Shown in pieces: positions 5 to 14,529 of a DNA stretch of 16,271 bases. The number at the start of each line of letters is the position of its first letter. Positions within the stretch are counted from its first letter, which is position 1. The position numbers and the translations under genes were made by a program. A model generated the notes under the pieces. That model worked only from the letters and a program-made list of their open reading frames with translations, made no database searches and was not told the DNA's origin. The stretch lies in the sequence record KY563228.1. One strand, given 5' to 3'.

Positions 5-18
5 GCCCTTTATAAAGT
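5..18 (+). promoter_or_regulatory. Archaeal BRE/TATA promoter (T9-like) for the a82-b251 operon, leaderless start
   Basis: GCCCTTTATAAAGT with TATA box TTTATAAA at 9-16, about 23-30 nt upstream of ATG 39. Identical 14-mers occur at 10858 and 12051. Confidence 0.85.
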
Positions 19-9533: not shown

Positions 9534-10147
9534 GTAGATTATTAAACATATTATATAATTATGAAATAGTGTCACAAAACGACACAAAGACTATATGGGT
9601 TACAGAGCTATCGCGGTGTCTAAGACGTTCGTATTTAATGAGGAAGGAAGGCAAAACGAAAGTTGGTTTAAACGAAGCAATGAAGATGCACATCGGTACG
9701 GGTCTACACATGCGTTTACAGAGCTTATTAAGAAAGCACGGTTTTGAGACTGAGGTGAGAGTACAAAGGAAGACTGCTTTGGGTTTTCAAATTGTAGGTA
9801 GGATAGATGTTTACGATAAGGAAGAGAACACAATATATGAGCTGAAATACACGCATAACGACAAATTGGATAGCGTTAGGTTAAACAACTACTTGCGTCA
9901 GCTGAATTATTATATAGAAATGGCTAACGCAATGAAGGGGTACTTAGTCATTGTGCATGCCGATGGCTCAGTTGAAGAAATTAAGAGGGATTGGGCAGAA
10001 ACGGATTTGGAAAAGCGTACAAACGTCTACGGGATCTATGTTGACGAGAACATACTACCACCTAAGAAACCTAAACCTGATAATGAATGCATTGAGTGTC
10101 CATTTTACAACTTCTGTTGGGGGAATAGGAATGGAGTCAGGCAGTGA
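9530..10147 (+). CDS. cas4: Cas4-like RecB-family nuclease with four Fe-S cysteines (205 aa)
   Basis: VTELSRCLRR (Cys1), HIGTGLH, GRID...YELK, QLNYY and C-terminal CIECPFYNFC (CxxC-x5-C). Confidence 0.92.
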   Translation: MSRLLNILYNYEIVSQNDTKTIWVTELSRCLRRSYLMRKEGKTKVGLNEAMKMHIGTGLHMRLQSLLRKHGFETEVRVQRKTALGFQIVGRIDVYDKEENTIYELKYTHNDKLDSVRLNNYLRQLNYYIEMANAMKGYLVIVHADGSVEEIKRDWAETDLEKRTNVYGIYVDENILPPKKPKPDNECIECPFYNFCWGNRNGVRQ

Positions 10148-10514
10148 AAGGCACCTGATTTACAAAAGTAACCATAAGGGGATTACTATTCACGTAACTT
10201 TAGAAGAGTTAGAGCGTTACCATTCTCTGACGCCGGAACAGAAAAGAATAATTAGGGCAATAGTCAAAACTTTGATTTATAACCCCCAACTGCTGAACGA
10301 AAGCTCTTATCTTTACAAATTACTGACGAGTAAAGCAGTCTCGCCTTACGTTTGCCCCCTCTGTCTCATGCCCTTTAGTTCCTCAGTTAGTCTGAAACAA
10401 CACATCCGTTATGCTGAACATACGAAAGTTTGCCCAGTATGTGAAAAAGCGTTTCAGAAGACTGACGCACTCTTAGACCATGTTTGCAAAAAACATAATA
10501 TCTGCGTTAGTTAG
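10131..10514 (+). CDS. b129: Double C2H2 zinc-finger protein, SSV1 B129 homolog (127 aa from ATG 10131)
   Basis: CPLC...HIRYAEH and CPVC...HVCKKH. The start was moved from the track's 9951 to ATG 10131 (MESGSERH), with GGGGG upstream. Confidence 0.93.
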   Translation: MESGSERHLIYKSNHKGITIHVTLEELERYHSLTPEQKRIIRAIVKTLIYNPQLLNESSYLYKLLTSKAVSPYVCPLCLMPFSSSVSLKQHIRYAEHTKVCPVCEKAFQKTDALLDHVCKKHNICVS

Positions 10515-10524
10515 GTGGTTTATC

Positions 10525-10857
10525 ATGGATAGGCTAAAGGTCTTATGGTTCATCTTCATTTTAGGTAATATTTATGATGTCGTAATATCGGCAATAGCGT
10601 GGAGGTATGGGGCTATGGAAATAAATCAAACTTTAATTGATTTAGGCTTATGGTATGGTAACACATCGTTTTTTGCAGTAATGGAAGCATTTGTTGGCGT
10701 CAAATTAATACTAATAGTTGGAGTTTATTGGTTCCTAAAATTATTCGAAAAACTTGGAGTTAGTAAGTATGAATGGTTGGGATTGGTACCATTCGCCATT
10801 GAAACAATTTTTGTTTTAATATATGATACTTATAATTTCGTAATGCATCTTTTTTAG
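10525..10857 (+). CDS. Membrane protein (110 aa from ATG 10525), apparent distant paralog of the 9225-9533 protein
   Basis: SD GGTGG at 10514-10518; three hydrophobic segments; motif D-x3-S-x6-G-x2-E-x-N. Confidence 0.8.
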   Translation: MDRLKVLWFIFILGNIYDVVISAIAWRYGAMEINQTLIDLGLWYGNTSFFAVMEAFVGVKLILIVGVYWFLKLFEKLGVSKYEWLGLVPFAIETIFVLIYDTYNFVMHLF

Positions 10858-10871
10858 GCCCTTTATAAAGT
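10858..10871 (+). promoter_or_regulatory. T3-like promoter for the a291-family gene
   Basis: GCCCTTTATAAAGT identical to 5-18; ATG at 10895 (leaderless or very short leader). Confidence 0.85.
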
Positions 10872-10894
10872 TACACTTTCCTTTTTCGCTTACA

Positions 10895-11791
10895 ATGAGG
10901 AAGTCCCTTCTAGCCCTTCTAACTCTATCCCTAGCGTTACTAATGTTGGCAACGCCTACCGGTGCTATATCTGCAAGTCAGTTAGGTGCAAGTCAAATAG
11001 TATTTACGACTAATCAATTCAACTTTGCCGGCGTTTCATATAGCAATGAATGGATTTCAACCTTCTTCCATGGTTGGAACCCAATCGTATATGATGTTGA
11101 GGGTATCTATTTAGGTAACATCTCTTTAGGGTACGTGAACAACCCTACTGGTAATGGCTATAATGAAATATTTATAGGTATAGGGCTTAGTGCATATGCC
11201 ACCGGGACTTTAGGAGGTGCCGGAACACCGGGACAAATTATAAACAATTCAGTGTTGGCGGGCTTATATATTGTAACTACCAGTAGTGGATACTATTATT
11301 ATGTAGGTGCTGAAACATTACAAAATGGTAATCTTATAGTTGCTAAAGATTCATCACCCATAACCGGTTCTCTTCCAATAAGCCTACAAATACAATTATA
11401 TGATGATGGAAACGGAACTGCAACTGCGTATATAACATTATATTATTCATATGGTCTACTGACATATAGTTTCTATGTCCCATATCCTTTTAATCCTAGT
11501 AACGGATATGCATCATATTCTGCACTCACTTTAATTGGTGCGGTATTGCAATTACCATATATTAGTGGAGGGCTAACGAGTTTTGATTTTGTCTACCAAA
11601 GTAACGGGCAAAACTATGAATGGCCGAATCAGATAGCCTCTGGTACTCAGATCATGGCGGGGGTTTATAGCATATCAGGTTCCGTAAACGAGTTGACACA
11701 AGTAAGTTTGTATAACGGTTTCTTAAATAATGGTTTGTGGTCTTACATCTATAATTTTAGTAATCCATATCCTACCACATATGCACTCTAA
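10895..11791 (+). CDS. a291: Secreted A291-family protein (298 aa), candidate killer toxin
   Basis: Conserved signal peptide MRKSLLALLTLSLALL; Y/G/S/N-rich body with sequons NIS, NNS, NGT and NFS; no C-terminal anchor; own promoter. Confidence 0.85.
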   Translation: MRKSLLALLTLSLALLMLATPTGAISASQLGASQIVFTTNQFNFAGVSYSNEWISTFFHGWNPIVYDVEGIYLGNISLGYVNNPTGNGYNEIFIGIGLSAYATGTLGGAGTPGQIINNSVLAGLYIVTTSSGYYYYVGAETLQNGNLIVAKDSSPITGSLPISLQIQLYDDGNGTATAYITLYYSYGLLTYSFYVPYPFNPSNGYASYSALTLIGAVLQLPYISGGLTSFDFVYQSNGQNYEWPNQIASGTQIMAGVYSISGSVNELTQVSLYNGFLNNGLWSYIYNFSNPYPTTYAL

Positions 11792-11798
11792 GGCAAAA

Positions 11799-11818
11799 TT
11801 TTTTATCCTTTCTTTTTT
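11799..11818 (+). terminator. T-rich terminator, possibly also the promoter of the next small gene
   Basis: T6 runs at 11799-11804 and 11813-11818 directly after the a291 stop. Confidence 0.55.
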
Positions 11819-11820
11819 AT

Positions 11821-12045
11821 ATGTTTAATCAAATGCCAACCGAGTCTATAACAAACGTAACAAACGGGTCTATAATACCGATTGTTAAGACTTATAACCC
11901 CTCCCCACCATCGCCGTTTCAAGTGGTTTATGATTACATCCCTACAATAATTCTATCGATAGGAATAACCCTTTTAGTTCTAACAATCTATCTATCACCA
12001 TCCCTCAGAATAACATTAAGAAAATTCTTCGTAAGACGAAAATAG
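11821..12045 (+). CDS. Small single-pass membrane protein (74 aa, or 70 aa from ATG 11833)
   Basis: N-terminal sequons NVT and NGS, Pro-rich linker, TM IPTIILSIGITLLVLTIYL, basic tail RITLRKFFVRRK. Confidence 0.75.
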   Translation: MFNQMPTESITNVTNGSIIPIVKTYNPSPPSPFQVVYDYIPTIILSIGITLLVLTIYLSPSLRITLRKFFVRRK

Positions 12046-12050
12046 ATTAA

Positions 12051-12064
12051 GCCCTTTATAAAGT
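12051..12064 (+). promoter_or_regulatory. Promoter for the vp4 structural operon
   Basis: Third identical GCCCTTTATAAAGT; ATG at 12085. Confidence 0.85.
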
Positions 12065-12084
12065 CACATAATTTTTATCGCTTA

Positions 12085-14529
12085 ATGAAGTGGGGGCCAT
12101 CTTTACTACTACTAACCCTCTTACTCTTACCTATCTTCTTCTTACCAACAAACGGTGTTATAACCGGGCCTCATCCATACTTTGACGGCGGAGGAGGTTT
12201 TACCGGGCCTTTCTTCAAATACTCTAACACAATTCAAGTTGGATCCTCTACTTTTTCTTCTAAATACAATGGTTCAACCCTTTCTACCGCACCATGGCTT
12301 AACCCAACTTACGTTTCGATATACAACACTTACTACCTTCAAGTTTTACCGAATCAACAGTACATTTCAAATAACGTATCTCTTTCTCTTTCATCATCAC
12401 AAATCGCTCTAAACGTCACATGGTTATTAGCGTCTTCCAGTAATTCCGGATCCTACGGTTCTATCGCAATAGGTTACGGTGTAAATTTTCCTTCAGGATT
12501 TACGGGTAACTATGCACCCGCACCACCTTACGCCTCTGACGGAATTGTAGTTTATTTAGAGAAAGGAGGTTTTCCAACATATAGGCTATTTGTATATTTT
12601 GACGGAGTTAAGCAACTAAATGTTAGTGTGGGTTCTCTGTCTATAGGACAACAAATAGGTTTAGGGTTCTGGTACTTGCCCGCCTCAAACCAACTTTACG
12701 TTTATTACTATAACGGTACTCTAAAGACTTTTTCAATAACGCCGGGTCAAGTTATCAATAATCAATTTTATCCTCTTTCATTGAATACTATAAATAGTAA
12801 TTATGTCATTGATGCTCAAAATGTTGGGCCGGGTTATGGATATGGCCAATGGGTGTTAATATCATACTCAATCTTCCAAACTAAGACATATAGTGCAACA
12901 CTTAGCTATACATCTGTTATTTTAGGCAATGGTATTCAGGCTTTGGCGGGATTTACTGGTGCGTACAACCCTTTAAACGTGTCCACTAATGTGACCTCTT
13001 GGTCTGTTGTAGGTATCGTTAAGGTTGTAAATTATAGTGTTTCAAACTCACAATATTCATTGATAGGTAGTGTGAGTTACTTAACATCAACAAATACTGT
13101 TTACTTCATTCTTAATAATATTTACCCCGCACCTAGTGTAAACACATGGTATCTTAACGTAACGTTAGAGTTTCAGTTTGTAACGCCCTCAAGTACAGTC
13201 TACAAGAATATTACAATTCCGATTTTTGACGGGGGATTTGCGGTTCTTGTCCAAGTAAGCTTACCGCAATCATCATACCTATCAGGTCAAACAATCAGCG
13301 TTTCTAATTCTACAACTATTGAATATCCGCCTAATGCGGGATATTCGTTAGCCTTAAAACCTTTTACGCAAATTAATATTCAGGGGTTGACTAACGGCTT
13401 TGTGCCATTGCCTTATACAATCACACAGACCGTAAGTGTCATAACTACATATTATTACGTTATAAACATACAATTCGGTCAATTCTCTCTAGGTAGTGCT
13501 ACCGGTACGATAACGATATACCCCGTGAGCCAATTACCCGTCATTTTTGTCTCTTCTTATCCTACATCGGTCACCGCGGGTACTAAGGTGACTATAACTT
13601 TTCAATTCACTCTCAATACACCCGTTTCTAACGTAACAATGTCGGCGTTTACTTATTCGACTACTACTTTCGCATGGACTTACGCACAGATAGTTTCATC
13701 TTCATCTCTAATAGAGTTTAAGGGATATTGGCTTAACGCCAGTGATGGGATCATAATCATTACACAAAGTCAAAACTATTTAATTCCCTTCAATTACGTA
13801 GGTTTGACGTTTTATAACAACAGTGTTAACACAATTCAGATCAACATTGTAAATAACGCGTTACAACTGAATGTTAATAATAACGTGCTAAACTTAGCTA
13901 ACTCATCTAAAGTTATAGGATTAGGTTTCTATTACGGTGCGGGGAAGTTAGTGTTAAACTGGTTCTTTGTTAGCGGTATCGTTTTGCAGTCTGCCACTGC
14001 AAATCAGGCGTATACGATTCTCGTAGGTACTTCACTTTCAACATTGTCACAATATACAAATGGATACACGAATGCGTCAGGGTTTGGACAAGTGACAGTG
14101 ACGCTTACATATACTCCTTACGAGTTAGTGGAAATCTATTGGGGCGGATTGCAGAAATACACTATACTCAACATTAGCGTCACTCAGCCTACTACAACTA
14201 CAACTACGACTGTGAATACTACAACAATAAACTACAACTACACTAATCCGTTTAGTAACAACATATCGCCTACATCAACATTATACAACTTCAGTAATGC
14301 CCAACCATGGGCTGAGCTTATAGGGATTGTTGTTACGGTGTTAGTAACTTTACTAGGGTGGAAGTTTGGCGGAAAAGGAGGTGCGTCAGGAGGTGCAGTG
14401 ATGGGGCTAATAATGGTTTCATACTTAGGCTTAGTGCCATGGTACATCTTTTACGTCTTCATTTTCGGCATAGCGTTACTATTAGCGAAAATATTCGTAG
14501 ACAAGTTTATGGGGAGTGATGAAGAATGA
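12085..14529 (+). CDS. vp4: VP4 tail/adsorption glycoprotein, SSV1 C792 homolog (814 aa)
   Basis: Signal peptide; PYFDGGGG; many N-x-S/T sequons; Thr-rich linker; C-terminal TM helices; followed by b78. Confidence 0.93.
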   Translation: MKWGPSLLLLTLLLLPIFFLPTNGVITGPHPYFDGGGGFTGPFFKYSNTIQVGSSTFSSKYNGSTLSTAPWLNPTYVSIYNTYYLQVLPNQQYISNNVSLSLSSSQIALNVTWLLASSSNSGSYGSIAIGYGVNFPSGFTGNYAPAPPYASDGIVVYLEKGGFPTYRLFVYFDGVKQLNVSVGSLSIGQQIGLGFWYLPASNQLYVYYYNGTLKTFSITPGQVINNQFYPLSLNTINSNYVIDAQNVGPGYGYGQWVLISYSIFQTKTYSATLSYTSVILGNGIQALAGFTGAYNPLNVSTNVTSWSVVGIVKVVNYSVSNSQYSLIGSVSYLTSTNTVYFILNNIYPAPSVNTWYLNVTLEFQFVTPSSTVYKNITIPIFDGGFAVLVQVSLPQSSYLSGQTISVSNSTTIEYPPNAGYSLALKPFTQINIQGLTNGFVPLPYTITQTVSVITTYYYVINIQFGQFSLGSATGTITIYPVSQLPVIFVSSYPTSVTAGTKVTITFQFTLNTPVSNVTMSAFTYSTTTFAWTYAQIVSSSSLIEFKGYWLNASDGIIIITQSQNYLIPFNYVGLTFYNNSVNTIQINIVNNALQLNVNNNVLNLANSSKVIGLGFYYGAGKLVLNWFFVSGIVLQSATANQAYTILVGTSLSTLSQYTNGYTNASGFGQVTVTLTYTPYELVEIYWGGLQKYTILNISVTQPTTTTTTTVNTTTINYNYTNPFSNNISPTSTLYNFSNAQPWAELIGIVVTVLVTLLGWKFGGKGGASGGAVMGLIMVSYLGLVPWYIFYVFIFGIALLLAKIFVDKFMGSDEE

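Follow-up and report, generated by a model that had tools for sequence, protein, structure and literature searches.

We analyzed a 16,271-bp window that is 100% identical to KY563228.1, the complete circular genome of the alphafusellovirus Sulfolobus spindle-shaped virus Lassen (SSV10), with a focus on positions 10858-12064. We read this region, with a probability of about 0.7, as the T3 toxin locus of SSV10, i.e., a cassette for a member of a secreted fusellovirus toxin family that is exchanged through conserved promoter islands and whose producer is protected by something other than the small membrane protein A74. In the KY563228.1 annotation, the region runs from C129 (a zinc-finger protein, homologue of SSV1 B-129) through A111, B298 and A74 to A814 (VP4). 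The two open reading frames (ORFs) that a first-pass annotation had placed between two promoters are real, both on the + strand: 10895-11791 (298 amino acids) and 11821-12045 (74 amino acids, or 70 from the ATG at 11833). The features of the locus and its surroundings, including the small membrane protein A111 upstream, are the following:

10450..10514, + strand: 3′ end of C129, a conserved island and the left edge of the recently shared A111-B298-A74 block
10522..10857, + strand: A111, small multi-pass membrane protein, phrog_8567 (function unknown)
10854..11002, + strand: conserved left arm, comprising T3 box, leader, start codon and signal-peptide codons
10858..10871, + strand: T3 promoter core, transcription factor B recognition element (BRE) plus TATA, TTTATAAA
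10895..11791, + strand: B298, predicted secreted beta-sandwich protein of the fusellovirus T3 toxin family, 298 amino acids
11792..11832, + strand: T-rich intergenic stretch, with equivalents assigned by position only
11821..12045, + strand: A74, single-pass membrane protein of 74 amino acids (70 from the internal ATG at 11833)
12051..12064, + strand: T4 promoter core, 34 nt upstream of the VP4 ATG and right edge of the variable cassette
12085..14529, + strand: A814 (VP4), end-filament protein, phrog_6848, conserved right flank
5..18, + strand: T9-equivalent promoter box GCCCTTTATAAAGT, 34 nt upstream of the ATG of ORF C82 (SSV1 A-82 homologue)

Judged by its position, the T-rich stretch may be the counterpart of the SSV1 terminator between A-291 and C-124, and may also hold the start region of the separate Tx transcript given to A74 in the SSV10 paper. 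GenBank entry MK054236 is labelled "strain SSV10" yet is an 18.5-kb Yellowstone virus distinct from SSV10 (SSV-Lassen), a name collision that can mislead comparison with the literature.

The cassette had been described as flanked by two identical 14-bp direct repeats that double as promoters. The 14-mer GCCCTTTATAAAGT is indeed exact at 10858 and 12051, and a third exact copy, missed in that description, lies at 5-18; with up to two mismatches allowed, these three matches compare with 0.24 expected, and none of 200 shuffles reached three. All three copies stand 34-37 nt upstream of an ATG, at positions matching the mapped T3, T4 and T9 promoters of SSV1, so that the proposed promoter role holds. 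The SSV1 transcripts T3 (A-291), T4 (C-792/VP4) and T9 (A-82) start 1 nt before the ATG (X07234 annotation); the SSV1 T9 box is the same 14-mer, its T3 and T4 boxes each differ at 2 positions, and the box is kept at the T3, T4 and T9 positions in >20 SSV genomes. Given these mapped positions, the spacing and the conservation, the boxes represent the BRE/TATA core of one promoter class driving leaderless mRNAs, and by analogy with SSV1, transcription from the SSV10 T3 promoter would start 1-2 nt upstream of the ATG at 10895 and yield a leaderless mRNA. Since there is a third copy at 5-18, the box marks a class of three promoters and not a cassette-flanking pair: the 14-mer is the common BRE/TATA core of alphafusellovirus T3/T4/T9 promoters, not a dedicated recombination site.

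Next, we evaluated B298. In a Kyte-Doolittle scan (19-residue window, threshold 1.6), its sole hydrophobic stretch covers residues 1-27; B298 is therefore predicted to carry a signal peptide (approximately residues 1-26) and no anchor, the mature part being free of transmembrane segments, which agrees with the original description of a signal-peptide protein without an anchor. It contains 4 sequons, and the remainder after the signal peptide is predicted to be all-beta. The gene occupies the slot between a B129-type zinc-finger gene and vp4, directly 3′ of the T3 promoter, and its product combines the conserved N-terminal signal peptide, a length of ~300 amino acids and the lack of a membrane anchor. 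SSV9 B310, SSV11 p29 and SSV1 A291 resemble it in all of this: they share the slot (B129 homologue, toxin, VP4), the T3 promoter, the conserved signal peptide beginning MRK, the length and a small membrane-protein gene downstream. SSV1 differs from SSV10 in lacking A111, which belongs to a co-inherited block in SSV10.

Membership in the A291 family, as proposed by the first-pass annotation, was borne out at the sequence level. B298 matches phrog_11028 and, along its whole length, shares 41% identity with SSV11 p29, which is experimentally toxic. With signal peptides removed, hhalign joined the A291 group (SSV1, SSV12, MK054215 and IMG643692045, an IMG/VR contig, our locus L004) to the B298/p29 family at 94.6% probability (expect value, E, 7e-8), and the B310 group showed no significant sequence match to that family beyond the signal peptide. 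A profile search of 1.84 billion representative proteins returned only 33 relatives, i.e., one small family, and nothing linking it to peptidases or glucanases; in Pfam scans, B298, A74, A111 and 10 + 21 family members (E up to 10) gave no useful family. A derivation of B298 from the VP4 receptor-binding domain was also considered and set aside, the two proteins being without similarity.

The role ascribed to this family, toxins acting on uninfected Sulfolobus, agrees with two published studies. DeWerff et al. 2021 (PMC8628083) reported that the gene in the toxin slot is highly transcribed in carrier-state cells, that SSV9 B310 or SSV11 p29 expressed alone yields supernatants inhibiting uninfected S. 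islandicus, and that "divergent homologues of SSV11 p29" occur in Lassen and Yellowstone viruses. According to Abshier et al. 2026 (PMC13431529), SSV1 a291 is required for halos and dispensable for replication and virions, its signal-peptide cleavage site is required, and "SSV10 ORF 299" can be modelled with a glucanase-like "hydrolase" fold. Wild-type SSV10 makes halos (Goodman and Stedman 2018, PMC6080066). Because the first two of these papers cover the toxin locus, the core idea of the first-pass annotation is a published hypothesis, and the SSV10 toxin with its candidate "antitoxin" neighbour is already in print, this virus included. Overall, the comparisons support B298 as a member of the A291/p29 fusellovirus toxin family, and by that kinship B298 would itself be toxic.

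Three side observations concern toxin frames. The SSV9/K1 database copy (locus L011, 6755 onward) has a stop after seven codons, and in SSV14 (locus L020, 2989) ACG replaces the start codon; both fit the re-annotation and "mut" calls of DeWerff 2021 (PMC8628083). Within B298, a 46-amino-acid ORF lies on the minus strand at 11343-11483; inside SSV1 a291, an antisense small RNA, T3E, has been mapped and proposed as an RNA antitoxin (bioRxiv 10.64898/2026.06.17.732947).

We then compared predicted structures. The B298 model is of moderate quality (predicted local distance difference test, pLDDT, 66.7; predicted template modelling score, pTM, 0.70), and that of a p29-type relative (IMG3300025341, locus L012, ~85% identical to p29) is good (pLDDT 88.4, pTM 0.86). 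For both, the top three Foldseek matches in the PDB were entries of scytalidoglutamic peptidase, the founding eqolisin (2IFW, 2IFR and 1S2B; E ~1e-6), with target-normalised template modelling (TM) scores of 0.53-0.62. The B. subtilis protease CPAVM1 and YncM followed these eqolisins; the glucanase 3AXD came at rank 12 for the B298 model, and in the list for the better model, the first entry of glycoside hydrolase family 16 (GH16) was at rank 38. The predicted toxin fold is thus closer to glutamic peptidases (eqolisins, MEROPS G1) than to glucanases. The GH16 beta-glucanase 3AXD, to which the model of Abshier 2026 refers, shares the concanavalin-A-like beta-sandwich superfold; it ranks below G1, and the GH16 motif E-x-D-x(-x)-E was in none of the 32 SSV toxin sequences checked, B298 included. 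With the catalytic motif lacking and the structural match weaker than that to G1, we rejected GH16 membership. We likewise rejected "Thermopsin", the UniRef name of the relative P0010: no member had a Pfam match, none of the thermopsin motifs listed in PMC3842238 was seen on reading the family alignment, and MEROPS A5 is not supported. Foldseek against the viral BFVD library gave generic lectin/glucanase-like matches only and no recognisable SSV toxin.

At the sequence level, the peptidase likeness is faint. Profile searches of PDB sequences with the toxin profiles found no match, solved G1 sequences included, and the B298 family had no match to Pfam Peptidase_G1 (E up to 10). In the G1 sequences, taken from the PDB, counting placed Q53 in AILQTG and E136 in AEFIIEDF. 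Local hhalign of the viral family against the G1 pair aligned NFVQAG with AILQTG as its top match (E 0.12). A greedy alignment was collinear across 191 columns (E 0.23), pairing NWAG with NWGG, WVALSP with WVGIDG, Q120 with Q53 and E209 with E136; it is non-significant by sequence and counts only as agreement with the structural result. Only the local and greedy modes gave collinear alignments, the global mode being meaningless here. Eqolisins (1S2B/2IFW; aspergilloglutamic peptidase 1Y43) and the viral toxins are both secreted and from acid environments, with a collinear motif order (NWAG, WV(A/G), xxQ(A/T)G, I(V/I)E). They differ in that the viral toxins are ~70 residues longer and have no significant sequence or profile match to eqolisins.

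By the collinear alignment, 15 of 21 family members keep both the Gln and the Glu paired with Q53 and E136, 4 have neither, 2 have only the Glu and none has only the Gln. B298 departs from those 15: like its close relatives, it carries Leu in place of the Gln and has lost the Glu segment by deletion. SSV2 ORF305 and SSV13 p30 also lack both residues. On its model, B298 looks like an acid protease that lost its catalytic residues. This raises an alternative in which B298, as a catalytically dead descendant of a glutamic-peptidase-like toxin, is mainly a protective decoy or receptor blocker against active toxins of related viruses and not a killer. Published assays (PMC8628083) fit it in part: SSV11 p29, which keeps the pair, is inhibitory, dyad-less SSV13 p30 does not inhibit uninfected cells, SSV13-infected lawns resist SSV11 p29, and toxin expression protects its own producer. 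However, the link to G1 peptidases is non-significant by sequence (E 0.12-0.23), SSV1 A291 is also without the canonical pair (Glu and Ser at the two positions) yet is needed for halos (PMC13431529), which goes against a simple pair rule, and wild-type SSV10 haloes. We consider this alternative unlikely. The same holds for its broader form, a speculative scenario in which the SSV toxin superfamily derives from secreted eqolisin-like peptidases, the pair-keepers (p29, SSV12 and ASV1 types) kill by acid-pH cell-surface proteolysis, and the pair-less types (B298 of SSV10, SSV7 and SSV8; SSV2 ORF305; SSV13 p30) are protective decoys. If it were true, the SSV10 cassette would be an immunity module and not a weapon, and host chromosomes would retain remnants of it for the same reason.

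The second gene of the cassette, A74, has the proposed single-pass topology: one hydrophobic span (residues 35-62), N-terminal sequons at N12 and N15, and a basic tail with 6 of 7 Lys/Arg in the last 12 residues. A74 is probably an N-out, glycosylated single-pass membrane protein. Its match to the PHROG profile starts only at residue 5, so that translation may in fact begin at the ATG at 11833. To compare viruses, we distinguish cassette types by their toxin: A, B298; B, p29; C, SSV2 ORF305; D, the A291 group; E, B310; and F, SSV13 p30. Products of the second gene ("gene 2") in different cassettes are remotely related: A74 matches SSV8 C82 (E 4e-8), gene 2 of IMG3300025341 (1e-7) and a 72-amino-acid protein of SSV12 and IMG643692045 (2e-4 to 8e-4), with further links leading to SSV1 C124 and C108. 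Features common to them are a stretch rich in proline, a motif resembling PPPWY-x-QY-x-PE, a transmembrane helix and a basic tail of the form Y-x-SP-x-x-R. The A74 family is one of diversified proline-rich small membrane proteins present in nearly all cassette types.

The first-pass annotation had cast A74, or else A111, as the cognate immunity factor, in the manner of bacteriocin-like pairs of a toxin and a membrane immunity protein. In its favour, B298 has an adjacent, co-inherited A74 homologue in each of the 7 type-A viruses examined, the genes A111, B298 and A74 are alike in their low synonymous divergence (see below), and DeWerff 2021 (PMC8628083) also reports linkage of toxin alleles with the downstream small genes. 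Additional gene 2 copies, a C82-type gene that usually accompanies p29-type toxins in SSV8 and MK054236 and a C108-type gene in SSV13, resemble orphan immunity genes; they also show that the linkage is not absolute. Published tests on homologues point the other way. SSV9 C108 alone neither inhibits nor protects, whereas cells expressing the toxin gene B310 alone are protected, and SSV13-infected cells are strongly inhibited by B310 despite a C108 homologue 82% identical to C108 (PMC8628083). Deletion of or insertion in SSV1 c124 has no phenotype (PMC13431529), and SSV10 with a Tn5 at 12003, inside A74, is functional and still haloes (PMC6080066). Nor is the pairing strict: IMG3300027932 (locus L013) has a toxin without gene 2, and in one chromosomal remnant (locus L028, described below) toxin and gene 2 types are uncoupled, a P0010-type toxin standing beside the gene 2 type otherwise seen with D-type (A291-group) toxins. 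As for A111, it is identical in flank sequence among E-type, F-type and cassette-less viruses. An immunity role for A74 or A111 is, by analogy with these homologues, unsupported and mostly contradicted, and we regard this explanation as improbable. Producer protection most likely comes from expression of the toxin gene itself, as in SSV9, and not from A74.

A separate observation concerns A111. Over its C-terminal two thirds (positions 10597-10851, against loci L012 and L021), the DNA is non-alignable between types A and B, with backbones otherwise 88-96% identical, yet Kamchatka viruses of types E and F and those without a cassette all have the same A111. Its association with toxin type is thus not consistent. 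Inherited together with B298 and A74 in type-A viruses, A111 is missing from SSV1, SSV2 and SSV12.

Both cassette genes might instead serve virion assembly, egress or adsorption as accessories linked to VP4, with no part in antagonism. In SSV1, the genes of the toxin locus adjoin VP4 and share the late expression of the coat proteins, the SSV10 genome paper (PMC6080066) lists B298/A74 under "virion assembly/egress", DeWerff 2021 (PMC8628083) suggested a similar role for gene 2, and A74 has a C-terminal anchor that is kept from one cassette type to another. However, SSV1 without a291 and c124 replicates and makes normal virions (PMC13431529), SSV15 does without both genes and IMG3300027932 without gene 2, and the "5 TMH" (five transmembrane helices) annotation of B298 was not reproduced, the protein having no hydrophobic span past the signal peptide and an all-beta model. 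We hold such an accessory role to be very unlikely.

We also examined where cassettes begin and end, using blastn between viruses with different cassette types. At the right edge, 8 of 9 comparisons have homology resuming at -14, -2, -2, -2, 0, 0, 0 and +1 nt, counted from the T4 box's first base, the single exception being SSV17 versus SSV13, which have gene 3 in common. The left edge is more variable: homology between types E and F ends 53 nt past the start of the T3 box, just after ATG-AGG-AAG, that between type A and type B or C ends 140-144 nt past it, after the signal peptide, and in comparisons where A111 is missing from one virus, it stops at the zinc-finger gene's stop codon. The T3 island (10854..11002) is 84-95% identical between viruses whose toxin bodies are non-alignable as DNA, compared with 70-88% for neighbouring core genes. 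The Kamchatka viruses SSV17, SSV13, SSV12 and SSV15 have flanks 92-98% identical and carry cassettes of type E, F, D and none, respectively.

Short conserved regulatory sequences that flank variable genes and coincide with recombination junctions are known from the lambdoid "linker" model and from the mobile promoter cassettes (promoter early stem-loop, PeSL) of T4-type phages. The SSV10 arrangement differs in its archaeal BRE/TATA elements and leaderless starts, in its three copies per genome and in one arm that extends into the signal-peptide coding region.

SSV15 and other viruses also carry box-linked REARRANGEMENTS, i.e., the SSV15 junction and the extra gene of SSV8 and MK054236. SSV15 (MK054207; locus L025, 3119-3500) has the zinc-finger gene, an A111 homologue, a single box and then VP4, with no toxin cassette. 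Its box is preceded by 20 nt identical to the T3 left flank of SSV17, SSV13 and SSV14 and followed by 26 nt identical to the T4 right flank of the same viruses, and the blastn segments overlap over the repeat only; the T3 and T4 boxes of these three viruses share 18 identical bases. From these alignments, the junction is what would be expected of recombination or slippage between two direct-repeat boxes, and direct-repeat deletion is documented for SSV1 vp1/vp3 (literature including PMC6080066). In SSV8/RH (locus L003, 7922-8273) and MK054236 (locus L016, 3578-3929), an extra gene 3 stands before VP4 with a duplicated box; it encodes the C82-type small membrane protein related to gene 2 of p29-type cassettes.

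Synonymous divergence (dS) separates the block from its surroundings. Between SSV10 and other type-A viruses (loci L007, L015, L016 and L027), dS was 0.03-0.08 for A111, 0.10-0.15 for B298 and 0.08-0.27 for A74, compared with 0.51-1.14 for C129 and 0.33-1.57 for VP4, so that A111-B298-A74 lies 3- to 30-fold below C129 and VP4 (positions 10125-14529). The ratio of non-synonymous to synonymous divergence (dN/dS) was 0.17-0.58 in the block (mostly 0.3-0.5) versus 0.09-0.17 in the flanks. In a sliding window against SSV7, identity was 92-100% over ~10460-12070 and 70-80% outside, with a dip at ~11810-11870 corresponding to the divergent start of A74. The low dS of the block together with the SSV7 identity pattern therefore indicates that A111-B298-A74 moved recently between divergent backbones.

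A contrary explanation would be that promoter boundaries only reflect selection on promoters, leaders and signal peptides, with the DNA between them diverging in place and the boxes having no role in recombination. The islands that are conserved do have functions (promoter, leaderless start and Sec signal), and dN/dS is raised in the block, as this explanation would have it. It does not account for backbones 92-98% identical around non-alignable cassettes, the clean box-to-box junction of SSV15, or the duplicated box with an extra gene in SSV8 and MK054236; and judging from the synonymous comparisons, in-place divergence cannot explain the A111-B298-A74 pattern. We regard it as highly improbable, the least probable of the alternatives weighed here. 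The first-pass annotation had gone further and made the boxes themselves the recombination points. The right edge at the T4 box and the box-to-box deletion in SSV15 agree with that proposal, but the left edge falls 53-144 nt past the start of the T3 box or at the 3′ end of C129. Recombination is thus partly supported in a modified form, in which conserved promoter-plus-start islands, joined on the left by signal-peptide codons or the C129 3′ end, would serve as the arms.

Related loci were also found outside viral genomes. Saccharolobus caldissimus AP025226.1 holds two remnants (L028, 7538-9602, and L029, 6307-9310) that keep only a zinc-finger stub, A111, the T3 box, the toxin, gene 2 (at one locus of the two), the T4 box and a VP4 stub; the boxes are intact, cellular genes and an IS110 element adjoin, and L029 carries two toxin cassettes in tandem. 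In S. islandicus CP002426.1 (locus L030, 3567-8441), where assignments follow ORF sizes and Pfam hits only, we found an integrase fragment, a zinc-finger stub, an A111 homologue (by ORF size), a split B298-type gene in pieces of 89 and 218 amino acids ~1 kb apart, a 67-amino-acid ORF at the A74 position and further ORFs.

Taken together, these data suggest the following model. The T3 promoter would drive a leaderless B298 mRNA, whose product would leave the cell by the host Sec pathway as a free beta-sandwich protein of ~270 residues, a member of the A291/p29 superfamily that in SSV9, SSV11 and SSV1 inhibits or kills uninfected Sulfolobus. A74 would probably be expressed from its own, weaker Tx transcript, and VP4 from the T4 promoter. 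With the T4 box and VP4 start as the right homology arm and either the T3 box, leader, start codon and signal peptide or the C129 3′ end as the left one, whole cassettes could be exchanged between SSV backbones through conserved islands, and recombination between T3 and T4 boxes within a genome would delete the cassette, as in SSV15. The producer would be protected by expression of the toxin gene and not by A74.

Several points weigh against this model. Stretches of 14-18 identical bases are short for homologous recombination, purifying selection on regulatory sequence alone would also place boundaries at promoters, and the SSV15 junction could have arisen by replication slippage. B298 is without the Gln/Glu pair that most relatives retain, and SSV13 p30, the one further dyad-less protein to have been assayed, left uninfected cells uninhibited (PMC8628083). 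Finally, the Tn5 insertion in A74 lies at codon 61 of 74, where partial function is possible.

The cited fusellovirus toxin papers make no mention of recombination, promoter boundaries, SSV15 or a peptidase-like fold. New here are cassette edges at shared promoter sequences with swap or deletion, the peptidase-like fold with loss of the pair, and the host chromosomal remnants. An analogy with yeast killer viruses was drawn by DeWerff 2021 (PMC8628083): in K1/K28 as in SSVs, a virus-encoded secreted toxin kills virus-free cells and the toxin gene protects the producer. The proteins and hosts are unrelated, and precursor-based immunity is a feature of K1/K28. The question of greatest interest raised here is whether the SSV toxins are eqolisin-like peptidases and whether the pair-less B298 is still a toxin. 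In this respect, the peptidase-like fold and the pattern of pair loss provide a first testable catalytic hypothesis, which might explain why SSV13 p30 is not toxic to naive cells. The three chromosomal remnants in two Sulfolobales genomes point to possible host domestication of the module. Together, the cassette edges at the T3/T4 islands and the SSV15 deletion suggest concretely how toxin types could turn over among otherwise near-identical viruses, at a locus that would explain how chronic archaeal viruses benefit their hosts, by the killing of uninfected competitors, and why SSVs form plaques without lysis.

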